Below, in pieces: positions 6,140-58,586 of a DNA stretch of 64,000 bases. A program made the translations under genes and the position numbers. A model generated the notes under the pieces. The model did no database searches. It was given only the letters and a program-made list of their open reading frames with translations, and was not told where the DNA came from. This DNA is from Dicyema japonicum (taxonomy: Eukaryota > Animalia > Dicyemida): assembly GCA_011109175.1 (NCBI GenBank), contig RDEW01000020.1, positions 62,001 to 126,000 of the forward strand. Reading direction: 5' to 3'. Every line of letters starts with the position of its first letter. The first letter of the stretch is position 1.

Positions 6140-6830
6140 CAGTGGTTCTCAACCGCAGCCCATCGGGCCGCATGCGTCCTTTTTAAAAGTATAAAAATAT
6201 TAAATATTTTTGGTGGATCCTCATGTCCAGATGAAGAAAACTATTGTTTGCATTAAATTTTAATTAATATTCAAGAAAATCGTGCATTTAACCCTAAATG
6301 GAAGGAATATTTTTTTTGAAGCCTGATTTGTCACGCACATTGCCTGATTTGTCATTTTATTATACGATGTCTGAGTCATATAATGTCGAGAGGCATTATA
6401 TGAATAATTTTTCAGAATATGTTTTTTTCAAGGTAAATCAAGAAAAATCTATATTTCTGTGAAATCAAATCGCAAACTAAACACCATTTTGTTAAATAGC
6501 ATATGTTCACTTTTAAAATACCAAATTACGAGTGCGTACAAAAATATGTCTGTAATTGGATCAGAATGTCTGTAAAGCTCTGTTCAGCAGACACACGGAT
6601 CAAAGCTAAATTTCGCAACCAATTAACTAATGAACATCTTATGCAACTGTTACGTACGTCTTCATCAAAACTGAGTCCCTGTTTTGAAAGAATAGTAGAA
6701 GGAAAGCAGATTCAATTCTCACATTGATTTTAGTTAATTAAGTTTAATTTTCTTTAAATTTTTTTGCGGCGCGCGAAACAATTGTTAATTATTGATTTGG
6801 CAAGCAGACCAATAAGGTTGAGAACCACTG
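6140..6830 (+). mobile_element. Internally deleted hAT (GTF2IRD2/SPIN-like) DNA transposon
   Basis: Perfect 15-bp TIRs CAGTGGTTCTCAACC (6140-6154) and GGTTGAGAACCACTG (6816-6830); ORF 6503-6727 KFRNQLTNEHLMQLLRTSSS resembles the hAT C-terminal dimerisation tail. No 8-bp TSD seen. Confidence 0.85.
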
Positions 6831-6986
6831 ATTAAAGTAGTACAACAAAATGTCGTTTTAATAATAATTAAACATTAAATAAAATAAAAATTTAAATTAA
6901 ATAAAAAAATAAAAAATAAAATGAGAAAGTCAAAATTATACAATCGTTTTCGCGTTGTGTGATCATTGATTTAAATTTTATTACGA

Positions 6987-9900
6987 ATGAAGAAAGTCTT
7001 TTCTGATGTAAAGTTGGACTTTAACGAAAAGCAGTCGTTAAAAGACGTTAAAATCAACAAGGGGATCATTATCAATGGTATTCTCACTTAAAGTAAATTT
7101 ACTAGAATTCAACTTAATTTGCCTCGTTGATCACTCCAATACTGTTTATATCTACTCAATATATGAAAGCAAACTGATAAAGCAAATAAAATTGGAGGAT
7201 TACTCCAAGAAGATGATTAAATCAGTCAATCAGATTTTGTTTTCCATAACCAGCTTAATTCCATCCATTTTTGTTGCCCATTCGTCTCCAAATTCCGAGG
7301 GAGGGATAATTATCATAAACATTGAAGACTTCGACTCTATCATTAGCATAAACACGTTGAATGAAGTTTCTTGCTGTTTTGAAGCTTAGGCGTTATCCTT
7401 GTTTGTGCTTTTGAAGGATAAACGGAAATTTGGAATGTCAGAGACCGTCATTTACGACGACTTTGTCCTCGTTGGATGTCCAATGGGAAAAATTTTCGTT
7501 TTTGGTATTTTTTCATATTAAATTACGCAACGACTATCATTTTGTTTTGTTTTACTCTATTTTGATAATATTTTACATTTCAGATTTGAATTCTGCCCTA
7601 AAAAACAATTTTTGGACTTTTAATGTGAGCATTCGCAAGCTGACGAATTTCACTTCATTTGCAGACAGTGAAAATAATATAAAAAGTGGGAAACTGTCAG
7701 CATACTGGATTAATAGTGAAATCTGGCTTATTTTAGGATTAAATTGCTGTGCCTCTGCATCTGTCACTCACATTAACTATATTTACTCTCGTAAACTGAT
7801 TCTGGTCGGCCTCAGTTCTGGCTTTGTCAAGATTTACCCACTTTTTAACGTCCCAACCACAAAGTAACTCTAAATTGCTTGTTTTAGAAATAACCTTAGC
7901 CTGAACGTGGGAAAAGAACTATCAATTCTCCATTCACAACAATTTCTCAACGTTTGTGGTGATGATTTCTCCAAATTAAATTTTTGGATCAGCTTCGGGT
8001 TTATTTTGTCATAATCCAGTAATAAAAACGTGGCTACTGGGCTTACACTTTTGCAAGTTGACTGCTCGAGTTTACTTAATACCAAGCAAATTTTGACGAT
8101 TGACTCCACCTACTTTAAAGGTACCCTACGAAGTCTGCAAATTGGTTCCATTTCAGACTACGTTTGCCCTGGGAAATACAACTTGACTGGTTTAATTTTA
8201 CTATTGCTATTTTACTAGATGTTTCTAATTTGAATGTGTTCTGCTCGACCACTGTTGAAGGAAATTGTCTAGTGGGGACTGTGTTTGTGTTTGATTGCAA
8301 CAAAATATTGAGTACTTACTCAAGGGAGGATGTTTTTGACAGGTTTGGATCTTATTTTACATGAGGTGCTGTCGCTCTGTTGAGTTCTTCCGCAGAGAGA
8401 AATTCCCTGATGATTCAGATTTGCTTGTTTCATTATTTTAATCATTTCAGAGCGTCTATGCCAGTTTTCCCTTAAACAGCCTTGATAAGTACTTGTCCAC
8501 TTTTTGTAGAGTTCATGATTATATTTAGCACTGAAAATACTCACTTTTGACGGTTATTGGAGTATGCTTGTCACGGGGGAACAATTCATGGTAGTATCTG
8601 CCTCTTATTTTAGCAACTTTATAAATTTTTGGAAAATAATAGAGAATCTAACCAAAACGAGGATACTTTTTTTACAAACTCAATCGAATCAATTTTAGAT
8701 GCTTTTCTAGTTGGAGATCACCACCCGAGTGTTCTTGAAAGCATATCTGAGCGATTTAGTGGTATTTACTAGCGTTTATTTTAGAAGTTCCTGGAAGAGT
8801 TCTCACGTGGGCTTCCACTAAAATACAAAATGGGTTGTCGATACTCTGTGATTTGGGTACATTTGTGGTCATTTTCATAGATAACAAAATAAGCGTTAAA
8901 TGTCAGAAGCGACTTTTGCTCGATTTGGTCGAATTTAGACGAAATTTGTATTCGATACAAAAGATTTTTGAGTATTTGGGGAAAAACGGACTTGTTGACA
9001 ATGGTTCGGGAGTCTAATATAGTTTAGCTCAAGTGCAAGTCAGTCAATGTGAGTCATTGGATAGACTTTTACAGTTTTTTCATAGTTTTCACTCAAATGA
9101 CTTTGTATTTGGTTTGCTTTGAGTAACTCAGTTTAGACCATTTCGGAAGCTTGAATTACCGTCGATTAATGTCGTCTTTGAAGGAAACGATTGATGAAAG
9201 AAACGCTGCCAATCGTCCCCCACCTTTGATTGAATTGTTGGTTGACAGATATGGCTGTTTTGATAGCAATTACAGTCCAATTGATATTATAGTTGTATTT
9301 TGTATTTATTATAGAAAATTCTCTCACTTCCTAGGATGAGTAGCCCATTTGATACATTCGCTGCTGTTTTGGCGTCTTATACTATATTAGATTTGGTCAA
9401 TTTGGCCGGACTTTCCGATTTTATTTCTTCTGATTTCAATTTTTTGGTGAATCTGTTAGATAGAATGTGTCTAACACTTCACAGTCACAGGATTTCTTTC
9501 ATTTCTTTAATAATTTGGATTATTGACAATAAAAGCTTAGACGAGGCCTCCAATCTTCTCAAAGTATTCATTCTCTCATTTTCAGACTGTAATACCAAAT
9601 CTGATGGAATATCCATTTCAAAGCGGCGATAAATGGCTGTGTGGGATGATTCTGCAGAGAATGGTCGTGTTTGGATTCTATGAGTTGGCTTACGAGTTTC
9701 TGACCTCTGTGAATATTTTCTCAGACGATTTGTTTGTTCTCAAATTATTCGTTTATATTCGGCTGGAGTTTTCGCATATTTTACTAATCCTTAGGATGTG
9801 GAATAGGGCAGTCAAAATTGTACTTTCTGAAGACAGATCTCCATTGATGCTTCACTTTGGCTTAAAAATGGCCGATTGTTTGCTGTTTAATTACTTTTAG

Positions 9901-12900
9901 CTGAAAATTTTGCAAGGACTTTGGCGCAATTCCCGATTTCCGCAGAATTTAAGGATAAAATATTCGACGTTGACTGTGGAAAGTCTCCAATGTTTGAAAA
10001 TTATGTTTCCTTCTATCTTGGGAATCAGTGCTTAATTTTCACCAAATCTCACTCAAATGTTACATTTATTAGTGAATGTAGGACTTGACCACGTGTATGA
10101 AGAATAATTTGATAAGAAAGCTAGAAGATGGTGGAAATGCCCCGGAAGATCCTCTTAAATCATTATTGGAAGCCTTTTCTCTTAAGCCTGACATGACCGA
10201 TGAGGCATGTGTGGATTTCTTTGCAGGTGGAATCAGGTTGTTTAAATGTCTGACATTTAGAGATGAAATTGATAGTCTGTGGACCAAAGACTGTGTAAAA
10301 CAAAGGGAACAAATAAAGTTGACTTGTTTAGACTATTATAGATATAGTTTGAATTCCTTATGGGAGGTTTTTGGATCTTATAAGTTTGAAAACAAGGCTG
10401 AACGGTATGTGCACTTTAACTGCAATCCGATAGTACACGAAATGTATTCTCTGTCCATAGTTTAGATTTGGCGATTCCTTTTCTGTTTGTCAGTCAGATG
10501 AAGCCCAGGTAAGCATAGTCAGTGATACGTCGATTGAGATGGTCAATTACTCATACCCAAATGAGCTAGTCTCTGATGTTCAAATGCTGACCTCTCCCGC
10601 TGATAATTACCATTTAATCAATCTGGGCGAATCGATACCGCAAATTGAACAAATGACAGGGAATATTGGCAGAGATGACCTATTCCAAGGCGAAGACATG
10701 TTAATTTCTCCAATTGTTAAAGCTGGGGACATTACTGGGTCGGTTACCTCACAGGATGTTAGTTATGTTGCAACACACTGCAGAACTAAGGACAAATCAG
10801 CGTTACCAAAACAAGACCGATTACCATCGACTACTTTGAAAGAGGACATGTCAGAGGTATCGAAAGGGGAACAGTCCCCAACTGGTGCTAATATTGGGGA
10901 ACAAACTCACACTTTGAATTCAGATAATCTTTTATCGGCATTTTCGCTTCGTGCCGCTATTACTAATCCTATTTATGATAATTATCAGAATATTATTGAA
11001 TCGAAGCTTATGGATAATTCTCGTTATTTGGATGAGAGTGCTCAGAGTTCTCCTGACCGAAGTATGTTGACCTCGGTGGATCAACCATTTACTCGCCTTC
11101 CGAACCTATCGAGGCCTTCTATTTCTTGTAAAACTGAGGACTTGCCTGAAAAAATATTATCAGTGATGTCTAATGTGGGTACCCCTATGGAGTTGTCAAC
11201 TATTGAATTGCCTGAATCCTCTAAGAAAGAAGATTTAATACGCGAATCAGTTTCTGGCTTGTCCTGTAGTGACGCACAATTTACTCCAAAATTTCCGCTT
11301 TTTGAGACACGTGACGATATTATTGAAACTGAGACTTCAGTAATTTATCAGCCGATGAATATTTCCATTCCAGCCACTGTTCCCCAATCTACTTTTGAAT
11401 CTCCGTTAGAGTCGTCTGTCTTTTTTGAAGTGAAACCTATTGAGGAGAACACCCCTCAGTCTAGTGAACAGTTCGAAACTAGAGAGGTTGAAAAACATTC
11501 ATTTTCATTACCCACAAAATTATTCGTCGAATCAAATGTTAGCATAGGTGACATTTCACCATTGGCAGGCTCAACTGATAATATGGAGTGTTCTTGTGCA
11601 TTGCCGATTACTTCAACTTTATCCCATAACGAATCATCAAAATTACCACCAGTGGAGATTACTGAAAAGATTACAGAGTGTCTTGATCGCCAAAGCACAA
11701 ATACTGGTGTCTTCAAGACTCCCAGTGTTCCTCAGTTACTTAGAGAAAAACATTCCCTAATCAAAGATGATTGTTCATTCACTCCCATGCCTAAACAAGT
11801 TCCATTTACAGAATTTTCCTTTCAGCAAAATATGGATGAATCGAAATATTCCTTTGCCGAACCCGCGACTATGTTGAACTACAGTAATCCTGGAGAAAGT
11901 GCTAATACTAGTATCTTTAATGCGGCCAGAGTTCCCCAGTTTTCTAAAGAAAGATTTTCGTTCGTCAAACCTGACAGTATATTTACCCCAGAACCTAAGA
12001 AACTTATAATTACAGAATCTACTGGGGAACTACCTGATTTTGATGCTAGTAAGGCTAATGTTGAACATGTTAATGAATCTAAATGTTTAATGAAAACACT
12101 TTCATGTCAAGAAGATTCCTCCGACGTCATGAGTTTTGTTCCTCCCCTTATTAAATTATCAGAGTCCGAAAAGCGACCTTTTGTGGGATTTGGGCTTTCT
12201 GACCCATCTGAGAAGACTAGTCACGAATTCCAGATTAATGAGTCACTCAAACATTCTTTTGCTCCTCCTTCCGTTATATTTCCCACGTCCTCGGATATTT
12301 CTCAGAATATGTGTGAACCATCTGCTGCTGGATTTGAATTTACAGGGCCCGATATTCTCTTTCAATCCACGTGCCAATCCATCAATGTTGGGTCAAAGTC
12401 AGTCATGGAATCTTCTGTTTTTACAGAGACTTTACCTGCTGACATTAATATTGGTCAGATACCATTATCTCAATCTGTGGAGACATCATTTATTACTCCC
12501 AGTTTTCTACAAACCGAACTATCAGGAAGAATTAGTGTAATTCAAGATGACAGACTGGGAGTTGTTAATTCTCCTTCTGTACTTCACAATCAGTCAAATA
12601 AGGAAACTCTTCAGGATCCTCAGGAAACGCCTTATTACTACCCAAAGTCGGCAGAAGAGACTGTGAGAGATATTTCTGGTGATTTCTCTGTCACTCAAAC
12701 AGAAAATGTCCGATCTGTTGTGGAAATTAGTGATTCGGGAAATAAAGATGTACCATGTGAAGTTTGTGATATTTTTGACTCTTAGGAAATGCCTTCTACC
12801 CAAAGCAATCAAGAAAATGAAGAATTTTCTGAAGAAACTGAAAAGCAATATGAAATTGTTTCAGATAAGGGAAATTTGTCGGAGGCTGCTATATTTGATA

Positions 12901-14148
12901 CTACAAAATGTGACATGACTTTTATTGAGGACGATTCCTTCAATGTCGTTGCAGAAACTGTTTCTGTGGACGATTCCATGAACGTTAAGGAAATCTTAGA
13001 TGAATTTGGGACAGATTTTGTGGAACCTAATCAAATGTGTATGGATGAGAGAACATCCTCGGAAAGTGATTCTGTCGAAGCTCAGTGGAACTCTGAGATT
13101 AAAGCTTTGAGTGAAGAGATTATCCACGAGGATGACATCTCAATCGAGGAGAATATGACTGAGTCGAATTTAGTTTGTGAGGAGGGATTTGAAAGTGATG
13201 TACAACAGGAATTGGAACCTCCTGAAGTATTGATCCACAATTTGTCAGCAAGTGATCATTCACACGACACACCGATTGGGGAGATTAGAAAAGTAGAATA
13301 TCATGATATAACTGTGGATAATCTCCCCAGGGTGGAAGGATCCTTTGTAGTTGCTGAGGAAAAACCCGAGTCTCCATTATCTGGGAATATTTGTGACCAA
13401 GTTGGGTCTTCACAAACTCGAGAATCAATTAGTCCTAAAGACGTTTTGGTGGAGGATAACAGTATTAAACTGGTGGTGGAGGATGAAAAGTTGGGTGAAG
13501 GTAAAAAACCCGGTGGTCGAAAGAAACCTGTAGCAAAATCAGTGAAGGCCACGAAAAATAGAAAAAAGATAGATAAAAATGCCAAAAAGAAGCCTGAAGA
13601 GAAGCATATTTTGTTGCCTCTTAATCCTTTGGATCAGGAAGTAGAGTCAGAGTAGTGTTTGTTGTCAGTTATCTTAGGAGGAGCATGCGAAGAAGAATGA
13701 GGTCGGTCATGAGGAAGTGTAGTTTAAAAGTCCTCGAGGATGTTGAACCTGAAGCTATAAATGATGATATATCGAATAAGGAGTTGGGAAAGTTTCTGAA
13801 GGAGAATGACATCAACTGTGGCCCGGTAAATAAATGGACACGAAAGACCTATTTAAGTCAATACTATTCTATAATGGAAAATAAACTCAAGAGTAGTTGT
13901 TTGTTCGATTTTTAGACGTTGGAGCACCCAAAAGCAAACAAGTTGTTAAAGACGATGAGACTGTAGGAGCTAAGAAAGGTAAACGTAAGGGAGGCAAGAA
14001 AGTTACATTTGAAAAGAAAGAGACCTTGATTAAACCTAAAAAAAGGTCTGTTTGTGAAGTAACTATTTGTAGGAGATTAGTTGAGACCAAAGAAAAACTT
14101 GATAGTCATTTAAAGTTGAGATCTGGAAGATCTATTAAAAAGAAATAG
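6987..14148 (+). CDS. AHCTF1: ELYS/MEL-28-like nucleoporin: beta-propeller + helical ELYS domain + long S/E-rich disordered region + LEM domain + basic tail
   Basis: VTHINYIYSRKLILVGLSSGFVKIY resembles human [42 protein letters not shown] resembles FWLIDHNDYESGLDLL; LAQFPIS resembles LLKFPFT. From about 10060 onward, 22-26-nt GT-AG introns join ORFs 10085, 10539, 12789, the LEM exon and 13897 in frame. Start codon and 5' exons are approximate. Confidence 0.65.
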
Positions 14149-14379
14149 TCTGTAATAATTTGTTAATTTGATTAATAACTCTTTTTTATTTAATTAGTTG
14201 TTTTTTATTTTATAATCGACTCGGATTATTGACAAATGGAGTCTTCGACAGTCTCTGTTCTAAGATCACTTTGGTCTGTGATATCGAAAATCGGCTCAAA
14301 TTTTTTACATATTTGTAGATATTTTGATATTATATGAAACAAGGGCAGCTCGATAGACTGGCCGCCTTTAAGAATTTTC

Positions 14380-14699: not shown

Positions 14700-16015
14700 A
14701 GTTCTTCATTAGGATTTTTGTCGTAAATACAAATATTCGTAGGTTGAACTCCCCTCTGCAAACGGCGAACTGTTCTAAACATTTGCGTTCCGTATCCCAA
14801 CTTCTCAATTTCACTGACACGTTCGTTAATTTTTTTACATAAATTTCATTTTTCCTCCTTTTAATCTCCTTGACAATACGATTTCTTTTTCTTCTTAACT
14901 CGATATAAGCATCACTTTTGTACACGATTCCATTCTCAGTCGCAATTTTTTGTTTAATTGATAATGAACCAATTTCGTGATCAAAGACCTCTTTAAATCC
15001 TTAATCCTCCTTTTAAACTTTTTTCCCCAAGCACGTCGAAACTTGCCTTCTTTATTCCCCAACAGTAGCATTCCAAATCATCTCTGGGGGATTTTCCATA
15101 TTTATGTTCACAATCTCCTTCCTAATTGCCATACAATAATCTTCACGCGTCTTCTCACATAAGCAATTTTTCCACAATAAAACGATCCAGATAAGCTCTC
15201 TTTGTTCTACCTCCATCTATTCCGAAATATCTTTTCATTCTGAAACGTGCAACCAGCAGTTTATGATCACTATAAGTGATAGTGCCTCTATAGCTGGGAG
15301 TCTGTTATTAACGCACAAAAAGATAGTTACATATAACATAATCAATCTGGTTGTATATCCGGACATAGTCACCATTTCCATCATTTCTGAGTCCAGCCCA
15401 TGTAGTCTTATGCCTCGCATTGTGGTCGAATGCAGAATTACAAATGAAGCAGTCAAACATGTTGCAAAATTGCACGAGCGATTCTCCTGACATATTCCTC
15501 TTCCTCCTGGCATGTCTACTCATACAGGGTTCTCTCCATGGACAGTGTCCCACTTTAGCATTCCAATCTCCACACAAAAAGGTCATAAACGAGCCTTTGA
15601 GATCAGAGATGGTATCCGTTAGTGACATATAAAACAGATCAAGTTCATCGGGATTTGTAGAAACTCTCGCCATTGTGGGCGCGTAGACATTAATTATAGA
15701 TATAAAGGAATTATCAGTCCTCCCACTCTTAATCTGAAGTACTGCTATTCTGTCATTCACCCTCCACACTCTGTGAATTCTCCCATCAAGACATTGATGT
15801 ATAGCCAAGTCCGTAGTGGTTGCATTCGGAGTCTAGTAGTATAAGTCTAAACTCTCCGTAATTCTCCTCAACTGCATCCTTCATTTTAGTCTCCTGTATA
15901 CTGCACATAGTGACCTTATATGATATTAAGTCACTTATTTAATCTTCCCTTTTCCGTTTTTCTTTCAAGCCTCGAACGTTGAATGACGCCAATGTGAACA
16001 GATTATTCGACATGT
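14700..16015 (-). mobile_element. RTE-clade retrotransposon APE endonuclease region (decayed)
   Basis: LASFNVRGL; RIAVLQIKS..IINVYAPT; LCGDWNAKVG; RHKTTW..YNQIDYVI (ORF 15308-15808). Confidence 0.85.
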
Positions 16016-18935: not shown

Positions 18936-19600
18936 ACCTCCAACACTTTTGCCATAATACATGCTATAGAGACCCGGCTGTGGGGAGACGAAACTCCATT
19001 GGTAGTAACACTACAGTGGAGATCGGGAACTACAGTAGAGTCATCTTTCAACTTTCCCGTCTTCCGAAAGAGTTCTTCAAGATGTTCTGAAGTGTGGGGG
19101 TGCAGATCCCAGATTGCCATAAATAACCCTTTTTCACGTGGAAATATGTGTTTGTATCTCATTCACAGGATGGTGGTTAACCGCAATTTTATGGGCAATC
19201 AAGAAAATACAAGTTGGTAGTTAATTGGTAGGAAGGTTGATGCGGTGACGTACCACCATTGTGCGAAATATCTACACCCCTTCATTACCGATAAACCATT
19301 CGTCTCCCTCTCAACTGACTGGGCGAAATGACTGACTCAGAGACATCCAAGTTTGGACCAAGAAAGCGTCGTAATCTCCAATGGCCAAAATCCAAGTGTG
19401 GACAAGGATTATCGCTGAGGAGCTAAAGGAGACCCTCAATCTGAATCAGAGATGTAGCCAAGTAATCTCAGTCAGATTATCGATAACCAATATAGCTGTA
19501 ATTACAAAAACGTGCGTGGAGACATATGGTGCTGTAACAGATTTGTGTTCCAGATATTGATTTGTGCAGATTTATATCTAATTTTGCACCAATTGGACGT

Positions 19601-20377
19601 ATGAACAAGTTTTTAATCAGGAAAATCAAATATTTGAGTTTTTGTCTCGGTTTTGTGACGATTTGTTGTTTCCAAGCCGGATTTCTGTCCCAAAAATTAA
19701 TCGAAATCAGCCAACTGAACTTACTTTGGCTTTTTTCCGACATTACCTGCATCCTCTTTTTCACAATTTTCCTCAGAGACCACTGGAAAATAAGCAACCA
19801 ACTTTCAGAAATGTCTCAGAGACAGATACTATTGGGATTCACGTCATTTCAGATACTTTTTATCACAGCATACATCAAGCTTTCGTCTCTTGGCCAATTA
19901 CAGTCATCCACGCTTATTTTCCTCGAAATGACCCTTGGATTTATGTTTTTCACTTTAAGCTCAGCAACGGAAATTTCCGGTCCCAAAAGCGACATCTTCA
20001 GCACATATTTACTTTCCATTGACTTCATCGATTCAGTGGATTTCCACGCTCTTGTCTACAGACACTATAAAATTGAATCCTTCACCAGAATGCTCCCCAC
20101 CCCTTTCATTACGACGTTGAGTTACTCCCTGATTTGCTTGGCAGTGGTGATTTTCACAGTCAACTATAAAAATTGGGCCACGAAGAGGACCAAGTATTCC
20201 AAAAAGTGGCTGATTTCTCTCTTGTTGTCCATGTTCCTGATCAACTCTCTATTTCTTATCATTAGAGTCTATATTTTGGTCCAATTTTCAACCTACATTT
20301 CAATTTTCATCCCCAAAAATGTTCTAATTGCTGTGATCTGCCTTGTCAGATTATCAGTCCAAGCATGCACCAAATAA
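19601..20377 (+). CDS. Multi-pass membrane protein, TMEM121/CECR6-like, intronless
   Basis: Open frame with several hydrophobic helices; IDFIDSVDF and FLINSLFLIIRVYILVQF..SIFIPKN resemble the CECR6/TMEM121 family motifs (from recall). Confidence 0.6.
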   Translation: MNKFLIRKIKYLSFCLGFVTICCFQAGFLSQKLIEISQLNLLWLFSDITCILFFTIFLRDHWKISNQLSEMSQRQILLGFTSFQILFITAYIKLSSLGQLQSSTLIFLEMTLGFMFFTLSSATEISGPKSDIFSTYLLSIDFIDSVDFHALVYRHYKIESFTRMLPTPFITTLSYSLICLAVVIFTVNYKNWATKRTKYSKKWLISLLLSMFLINSLFLIIRVYILVQFSTYISIFIPKNVLIAVICLVRLSVQACTK

Positions 20378-21389: not shown

Positions 21390-24977
<3,588 letters not shown>

Positions 24978-57525: not shown

Positions 57526-58586
57526 ATGAGTGAAAGGGATGTGAGTATTTCTTTTGCTGGCTGTGGATTTCTTGGTCTTTACCACGTTGGCGCAGTCAGA
57601 TGTATTCAAGAAAACGCACCTAATTTGCTGGAAGGAAAATTTCTTGGCTGTTCAGTGGGAGGACTCATATCGACCTCAATAATTATTGGATGTTCTCTTG
57701 ACCGTACTTCAAATATGATCCTCGAATTCTCTTCCAATGCTCGTTCAAGATTCCTTGGACCCTTTCATCCGTTTTTCAACCCTTCAAAGATCCTCAAACG
57801 GATCATCACGGATATACTTCCCCCAAATGCCTACCAACTCTGCACAAATCGTTTGTATTTGTCTCTTACCCGTGTAACTGATGGATCTAATGTCATTGTC
57901 AGCGAATTTACCTCCAATAAAGAGCTCACTGATGCTCTGTTGTGTTCTTGCCACATTCCAATCTTCTCTGGACTGGTCCCACCAAAATTCAGAGGTGTTT
58001 TCTACGTCGATGGATTTCTTTCGAACAACCTCTTGTCTTTTGGAGACGACACAATTACAGTGTCTCCTTTTTGTGGGTCAGTGGATATTTGCCCCAAGGA
58101 TTGTTGTGAAATGCCCTTTGATTCCTTTTTGGGGACGACTCCCATGCAATTTTCCCTTTTCAACTTTTTACGTCTCATAAATGTTGTGTATCCACCCTCT
58201 TCTGTCTCGTTTGAGAACCTTGCCCGTCAAGGATACCACGATGCTCTTCGTTTCTTGACCTCTTCTCAGTCCTGCTTCAGTCCTTTGCTTAGTCCAGCTT
58301 GTCCGTGCTGTATTCACGCTCACTACACTCCACTGACCAAGGAAAAGTCTCCTATATTGCTTTACACACGTGTTCTGTCGAGCGTTGTTTTTTTGCCATT
58401 GCAATTACTACTGTCTTGCTTATGAGGTTCGTCGCTTACTGCCCTGATCTCTTTGTGGATTTGAGAATTGTTGTTGGTTCGATTCATAGAGGATCTAAAA
58501 GAAAGTTGAAGAGATCTGTGAGCAAAATGACCCCTGATGACTCGTATTTCTACTTCAAACGAGTGAGATTCATCTTAAAGACTTAA
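57526..58586 (+). CDS. PNPLA2: Patatin-like triglyceride lipase (ATGL/PNPLA2 family)
   Basis: SFAGCGFLGLYHVG glycine loop, GCSVG nucleophile, YVDG catalytic Asp. ORF 57526-58425; a C-terminal extension to 58586 in another frame is uncertain. Confidence 0.9.

Follow-up and report, generated by a model that had tools for sequence, protein, structure and literature searches.

A LEM domain near the C-terminal end of a predicted large soluble protein with ELYS/MEL-28-like layout in the dicyemid Dicyema japonicum

Structure of the locus

The stretch of DNA considered here comprises 64 kb of Dicyema japonicum contig RDEW01000020.1 (positions 62,001 to 126,000 of the forward strand) and is referred to as the window. 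Positions 7075-14148 (+) of the window are proposed to hold a single gene of 22 exons, which are separated by 21 GT-AG introns and together provide 2,172 codons plus a stop. Twenty of these introns measure 21-29 nt, and the remaining one spans 79 nt (7505-7583). The model was built by working backwards through GT..AG segments of 20-32 nt, retaining those that leave the frame open, and was subsequently refined by hand; the resulting chain ties the long open reading frame (ORF) at 10461-12782 to stop-free segments reaching back to about 7040. The spliced model starts with the ATG at 7075, ends with the stop codon at 14146-14148 and contains no internal stop. The introns are rich in T (38-61%), begin with GTA or GTT and in most cases have TTTAG, TTCAG or CTTAG at the 3' end, and all ORF-ending stops between 7386 and 13915 fall within T-rich GT..AG segments that restore a long open frame. 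During refinement, two automatically placed introns (8731-8759 and 10433-10460) were dropped in favor of 8762-8784 and 10444-10465, which are closer to the consensus.

Exons 1-17 (7075-10443, +) encode an N-terminal region that is hydrophobic, presumably folded and about 980 residues long. A 22-nt mini-intron (10444-10465, +), which covers a stop codon at 10463-10465, joins this folded part to exon 18 (10466-12761, +), whose 765 codons specify an acidic, Ser/Thr/Glu-rich and disordered sequence. The following 24-nt mini-intron (12762-12785, +) is in frame and contains the sole stop between two long ORFs. It leads into exon 19 (12786-13651, +), 288 codons in length and very acidic, with a basic patch at its end. 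A 26-nt mini-intron (13652-13677, +) then covers the stop at 13653-13655 and shifts the reading to the frame of exon 20 (13678-13892, +), in which a basic helix precedes the LEM domain. Downstream of a further mini-intron of 23 nt (13893-13915, +), again covering a stop (13913-13915), exons 21-22 (13916-14148, +) specify a Lys/Arg-rich tail that terminates at 14146-14148; a 27-nt segment within it (14046-14072, +) may be regarded as an optional intron, since it is in frame and free of stops. An earlier note on this DNA, made from the sequence alone, had described mini-introns of 26 and 23 nt on either side of the LEM exon, and both are present. The intron of 22 nt that it placed upstream is probably the one at 10444-10465, and the two long ORFs are separated by the in-frame intron of 24 nt. 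The in-frame linkage of the LEM exon to the long disordered ORFs, likewise claimed in that note, is supported by the logic of the gene model, in which splicing itself is predicted.

To place the junctions around the LEM exon on a quantitative scale, a position weight matrix (PWM) was trained solely on the 16 upstream mini-introns, which score from -3.0 to 7.3 when each is left out in turn, and the background consisted of all 2,023 GT..AG candidates of the window that measure 20-29 nt. On this scale, the intron directly preceding the LEM exon (13652-13677) reaches 5.8 and ranks among the top 0.7% of candidates, followed by 14046-14072 (1.0, top 8%), 13893-13915 (0.7, top 9%) and 12762-12785 (-0.3, top 13%). 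Thus, all four introns around the LEM exon score inside the range of the 16 upstream ones, among which 10444-10465 is one of the best (5.9, leave-one-out). Equally good GT..AG candidates cover 7.9% of the bases of the window, and the chance of a stop-covering intron that also supplies the correct downstream frame is about 0.026 per junction; therefore, three consecutive junctions of this kind would arise with a probability of about 2e-5 if the ORFs were unrelated. From these sequence features we consider it probable that the LEM exon and the long disordered ORFs belong, together with the folded N-terminal region, to one predicted gene.

The genome of D. japonicum comprises 67.5 Mb with 5,012 genes and 49% repeats, which amounts to one gene per 13 kb, and it is characterized by a GC content of 36.7%, a heterozygosity of 1.24% and very short introns (PMC6736024). 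Introns of such tiny size are otherwise found among animals only in myxobolid cnidarians, with about 29% GC (PMC13644364). The window itself has a GC content of about 38%, contains LINE fragments and displays frequent allelic differences in the reads; within its 64 kb, recognizable neighbor genes and LINE fragments lie kilobases away from the locus.

A different partition of the same sequence would assign exons 20-22 to a gene of their own, with translation beginning at the ATG at 13686 and a product of about 138 residues that is soluble and basic, so that the upstream gene would end at 13653. The LEM domain would then be situated near the N-terminus, as in emerin, LAP2, MAN1 and otefin, and in-frame ATGs are indeed available at 13686, 13698 and 13710; moreover, ATGs occur one to two codons past the acceptors of both exon 19 (12789) and exon 20 (13686). 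The four sequencing runs that contain the locus, all from one 2019 study, yield collinear DNA contigs over 8300-14250 with Nextera adapter ends; they are DNA runs and contain no exon joints, including that of 13651 to 13678. Against a separate gene stands the distance of about 30 nt from the stop at 13653 to the downstream ATG (13686), which in a gene-poor genome leaves no room for a promoter, and this interval (13653-13686) also lacks an AATAAA for the end of an upstream gene. Furthermore, the stop in question lies inside a top-0.7% intron candidate that joins the two frames exactly, and the same pattern recurs at 12762-12785 and at 10444-10465, with the joint chance of about 2e-5 given above. 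Two genes at this position are accordingly improbable, and the continuous model from 7075 to 14148 is followed below.

A LEM domain in exon 20

The peptide of interest is read in the frame of the forward-strand ORF 13655-13915. Within it, the stretch matched by the Pfam LEM profile PF03020 covers 13766-13855 (+) and represents the core of the domain, the second helix of which continues to about 13891. The curated gathering cut-off of PF03020 is 24 bits and is exceeded under three delimitations of the segment, namely by the ORF taken from stop to stop (26.9 bits, E 3.5e-6), by exon 20 taken as 13679-13891 (27.2 bits) and by the interval 13754-13891 (28.9 bits, E 8.3e-7). This corresponds to an E-value of about 1e-6 per protein, or about 5e-3 if all ORFs of the window are allowed for. 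In emerin, the residues conserved with LAP2 form the blocks 11EL, 24GPVV, 30TR and 34Y (PMC3810338 Table 2). EL, GPV, TR and Y are all present in the segment, and their spacing is that of emerin (E to G 13, G to T 6 and T to Y 4 positions). No SAP or other Pfam family competes for the segment, which occurs as a single copy within the 64-kb window.

Pairwise comparison of the segment by phmmer returned no LEM chain from the PDB sequences and, for a 51-residue version, nothing at E<=0.001 among 1.84 billion representative sequences. Such blank results are expected, because a LEM domain comprises only about 40 residues; therefore, the assignment is carried by the profile match together with the motif spacing and the modeled fold.

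The fold was modeled by AlphaFold in single-sequence mode for the whole exon and for the LEM portion separately. The whole-exon model (71 residues, pLDDT 74.7) displays helices at residues 4-21, 33-42 and 52-70, of which the basic N-terminal helix packs against the helix-loop-helix formed by the other two. Comparison of this 71-residue model by Foldseek against the PDB and by VIA-align gave merely generic helical matches. A shape search of the ESM Atlas, on the other hand, retrieved an emerin cluster (98% PF03020) exactly over exon residues 26-71. The LEM-only model (46 residues, pLDDT 83) consists of a helix-loop-helix with helices at 8-17 and 30-45, and its first three ranks in the Foldseek search of the PDB are all emerin LEM structures, namely 1jei, 6rpr_G and 6ghd_H. 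These matches have TM scores of 0.53-0.63 under either normalization, an rmsd of 2.4-2.7 Å and 26-32% identity, with E-values of about 1 because the domain is tiny. When the 46-residue model was compared by VIA-align with 48,161 representatives, the proteins listed were those of the helix-extended-loop-helix (HeH) superfold, comprising the Rho N-terminal domain, many SAP domains, emerin and LAP2; emerin is represented by 2odc_I (Z 4.8) and 7ndy_G (Z 4.5), and the LEM-like domain of LAP2 by a Z-score of 3.8. We conclude with moderate confidence, as far as a modeled structure permits, that the fold would be of the HeH type and the sequence signature of the LEM type, that is, BAF-binding.

Membership of such a broad superfold leads to the question of whether the segment might be a generic HeH or SAP DNA-binding motif, or a chance profile match, without affinity for BAF. 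The Pfam score exceeds the cut-off by just 3-5 bits, Rho, SAP and MANF domains match emerin in shape score, and LEM proteins are missing from the pairwise searches, all of which would fit such a motif. Opposed to this are the four LEM-specific blocks at exact emerin spacing, two of which, GPV and TR, coincide with the emerin mutants M24 and M30 (PMC3810338 Table 2), as well as the lack of any SAP family match to the segment; in addition, the highest identities among the structural matches belong to emerin LEM domains (22-32%). A generic DNA-binding motif or a chance match is therefore highly improbable. The LEM pattern that the earlier note had recognized at 13740-13890 is borne out by the profile score above the cut-off, the emerin spacing and the modeled fold, and the domain is very probably genuine.

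Character of the encoded polypeptide

The local composition of the predicted protein divides it into distinct parts. Residues 1-980 have a hydrophobic fraction (ILVFMWYC) of 0.40-0.53 versus 0.26-0.33 downstream, and within the first 420 residues blade-like VG..G motifs can be seen by eye to recur. Residues 980-1984 carry a net charge of -104 and contain few hydrophobic residues; internal repeats noticed by eye in this disordered region found no blastp support at E<=0.01. The acidic part gives way to a basic patch at residues 1985-2017 (13506-13604, +) with 45% Lys/Arg, which includes the sequence GGRKKP. The LEM domain occupies residues 2062-2104, approximately, of the 2,172 and is followed by a C-terminal tail of 68 residues with 37% Lys/Arg and two K-K/R-x-K/R motifs. 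No hydrophobic segment follows the LEM domain in this 68-residue tail.

A regular-expression scan of the model identified the sequence KKVTF (13996-14010, +) in the tail, an RVxF-type motif resembling docking sites for the phosphatase PP1 and the sole match of this type outside the folded part. It is possible that KKVTF serves as a PP1 dock beside the LEM domain, for which the motif itself is weak evidence because it is short. AT-hook sequences were also sought, and neither GRP nor [KR]G[KR]P is present anywhere in the model, the nearest approach being the GGRKKP of the basic patch. AHCTF1 is named after its AT-hook, and human ELYS has 2,266 residues. ELYS is further characterized by binding to the Nup107-160 complex and by its presence at pores and kinetochores.

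Possible relation of the N-terminal region to ELYS

The earlier note had designated the protein ELYS-like. With respect to layout this description holds, in that a folded region of about 980 residues is succeeded by an acidic region of about 1,000 residues and a basic end with an RVxF-type motif. At the level of sequence it found no counterpart, as no exon matched ELYS in Pfam, the PDB or ELYS clusters. PF13934 (ELYS), the profile of the central helical domain, gave no match at E<=10 to any of the exons or stop-free segments, a search of low power as it was made with exon pieces only. For exons 1, 3 and others, ranging in length from 18 to 97 residues, neither PF16687 (ELYS-bb), which stands for the N-terminal beta-propeller of seven blades (mouse structure 4I0O), nor the PDB sequences gave a match, and among the PDB sequences, which we take to include ELYS chains, exons 1, 3, 11, 14, 15, 16, 17 and 20 retrieved chance-level entries without any ELYS or LEM chain. 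These exon-level tests are of low power because the HMMER filters drop pieces of about 10-15 bits; the region that we take to be the ELYS helical domain would be split across exons of 83, 97 and 52 residues. As a lead only, exons 14-16 presumably show a likeness to the central part of the helical domain in human ELYS, in that a W-(L/I)-I-D motif is followed by the pattern W...I.Q...G...A and the motif (L/F)-P-(F/I)-(T/S). A word search for relatives and transcript-derived proteins with exons 15, 18 and 19 yielded nothing, including no self match, and neither ELYS nor LEM nor any nucleoporin is listed in the supplementary material published with the D. japonicum genome.

Searches by Atlas features gave nothing for exon 14. 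For exon 15, the nearest neighbors were TPR solenoids of the IFT140/172, ELP1 and Gemin5 type at 0.83-0.87 (IFT140/172 at 0.86), which is below the level of 0.9 regarded as meaningful for this measure. As a lead only, the features of exon 15 hence point to predicted alpha-solenoid (TPR) repeats.

These results bear on a second view of the locus, in which there is one gene with a C-terminal LEM domain and the N-terminal 980 residues are not ELYS but belong to a lineage-specific or some other propeller/solenoid protein. The blank exon-level ELYS searches, the neighbors of exon 15 in the Atlas and the lack of an AT-hook would all accord with it. However, IFT, ELP1 and Gemin5 are well conserved, so that a Pfam match would be expected even from single exons, and these proteins have no acidic tail of 1,000 residues that ends in a basic chromatin-binding module. 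Furthermore, the folded and the disordered part match those of ELYS/MEL-28 in size, and ELYS orthologues are themselves very divergent, worm and human ELYS sharing at best about 23% identity (PMC4920428). We therefore regard an N-terminus unrelated to ELYS as unlikely, albeit less so than a separate LEM gene. Were it correct, the locus would specify a new soluble LEM-domain protein and no nucleoporin fusion. Orthology to ELYS, argued here by analogy of layout, is slightly favored.

Known ELYS and LEM proteins compared

In ELYS, the structured N-terminal part consists of a beta-propeller and an alpha-helical domain and comprises 1,018 residues in human and 956 in worm, and the C-terminal half is unstructured and contains nuclear localization signals as well as chromatin-binding elements (PMC4920428). 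Binding of ELYS to chromatin involves the AT-hook and a further C-terminal domain, which contacts the acidic patch of the nucleosome (PMC7764596). In addition, PP1 is bound by MEL-28/ELYS (PMC9576876). The D. japonicum model resembles these proteins in size (2,172 residues versus 1,784 in worm), in the extent of its hydrophobic part (about 980 residues here, about 950-1,020 structured residues there) and in what follows this part, namely a long acidic half that is unstructured and then a C-terminal end that is basic and putatively chromatin-binding, and its RVxF-type motif would fit the PP1 binding reported there. It differs in that it has neither an AT-hook nor a sequence-level match and instead carries a LEM domain 70 residues from the C-terminus. 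The match in layout falls short of proving homology. That no ELYS is known to carry a LEM domain, as the earlier note had stated, agrees with the literature searched, in which none is described and ELYS and LEM proteins are treated as separate players; reviews of ELYS and of the evolution of nuclear structure likewise mention no ELYS-LEM polypeptide.

With emerin, LAP2, MAN1 and LEM2 the D. japonicum domain shares the EL, GPV, TR and Y blocks and the helix-loop-helix, its best likeness being the LEM domain of emerin. In those proteins, however, an N-terminal LEM domain is combined with transmembrane segments, whereas here a C-terminal LEM domain is followed by a lysine-rich tail, and neither an MSC domain nor any other known domain accompanies it. 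A further group of LEM proteins contains ankyrin repeats, which are combined with a nuclease domain in ANKLE1 and are also present in ANKLE2. A parallel may also be offered by ANKLE2/LEM4 and LAP2alpha, which are not inner-membrane anchors of the classical kind and in which the LEM domain docks a large scaffold, active in nuclear reassembly, onto BAF. ANKLE2 moreover couples BAF to a phosphatase, and the D. japonicum model has its RVxF-type motif 32 residues downstream of the LEM exon. The model contains neither ankyrin repeats nor the C-terminal domain of LAP2alpha, and the type of its motif is that of PP1 and not of PP2A. LEM domains are normally N-terminal (PMC3810338), and a C-terminal LEM domain on a soluble scaffold of about 2,000 residues is absent from the described LEM families.

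A possible link between pore seeding and BAF

The explanation that we prefer, with a probability of about 0.5, is a single gene with the layout of ELYS/MEL-28 in which the position held by AT-hooks in other ELYS proteins is taken by a LEM domain. According to this explanation, the helix-loop-helix of the LEM domain would engage the chromatin-associated BAF dimer, DNA or nucleosomes would be bound by the basic sequences on either side, and chromatin, post-mitotic or peripheral, would thereby serve as an anchor for the folded N-terminal part. The basic patch, the LEM domain and the lysine-rich tail with its RVxF-type motif may thus constitute one chromatin-targeting module. More tentative, with odds that we place a little below even, is the evolutionary and functional extension of this explanation, namely that a dicyemid ELYS orthologue lost its AT-hooks and gained a LEM domain, and that pore seeding is tethered to chromatin via BAF.

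In animal cells that divide by open mitosis, the nuclear envelope is rebuilt along two spatially distinct routes: ELYS seeds pores on "non-core" chromatin, and BAF together with LEM membrane proteins builds the pore-free "core" (PMC3383574, PMC9576876). If the preferred explanation is true, the ELYS-dependent "non-core" route and the BAF/LEM "core" route, which occupy separate subdomains of the envelope in human cells, would be merged in one polypeptide. It would also constitute a case of module replacement, LEM for AT-hook, in a parasite of about 30 cells with about 5,000 genes, and would offer a direct test of whether docking to BAF can replace AT-hook and nucleosome binding in pore seeding. 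Should the N-terminus not be that of ELYS, the locus would still specify a soluble protein, about 2,170 residues in length, whose C-terminal LEM domain sets its architecture apart from the LEM families described.

Allelic variation

The DNA runs reveal 24 coding differences between alleles in exons 18-19 (about 3.2 kb), of which 6 are synonymous and 18 non-synonymous, compared with 2 in the covered portion of the folded part and none in the LEM exon. These counts fit a disordered linker under weak constraint, the differences being too sparse for any further statement. Three adjacent differences at 13201-13205 travel together and change Val-Gln to Ala-Tyr without creating a stop. One further allelic difference is located at 13900, inside the intron 13893-13915.

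Internal features of the gene model

Within exon 18 (10466-12761), which encodes an acidic disordered stretch of the proposed 22-exon gene, the segment at 12032-12246 represents two diverged haplotypes: it carries a dense cluster of 13 allelic differences in 215 nt, most of which are non-synonymous, and the DNA contigs from all four sequencing runs covering the locus break up there. Further downstream, in-frame ATG codons on the forward strand are located one to two codons past the proposed acceptor sites of both exon 19 (12789-12791) and exon 20 (13686-13688), the latter exon encoding the LEM domain. Given a methionine frequency of 2.1%, the two placements together amount to a coincidence of about 1%; these ATGs could serve as internal starts or could reflect chance.

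While 20 introns of the gene model are mini-introns of 21-29 nt, a single one (7505-7583) spans 79 nt; the latter appears conventional and has a pyrimidine-rich 3' end.

Flanking regions and further ORFs

On its upstream side, the region of the proposed start codon (ATG at 7075) adjoins an extremely A/T-rich stretch with A-runs (6830-6950), which may constitute the promoter of the gene or an intergenic boundary. Shortly downstream of the gene model, an ORF on the reverse strand (15308-15808) is a LINE fragment, its match to the endonuclease/reverse-transcriptase family Exo_endo_phos_2 being weak and under the cut-off (E 1.2e-4). The forward strand additionally harbors an ORF that matches the CECR6/TMEM121 family (19562-20377; 37.8 bits, E 2.3e-9), a P-type (E1-E2) ATPase fragment slightly below the cut-off (22003-22524; 27.4 bits) and an ORF for a patatin-like phospholipase (57526-58425; 53.4 bits).
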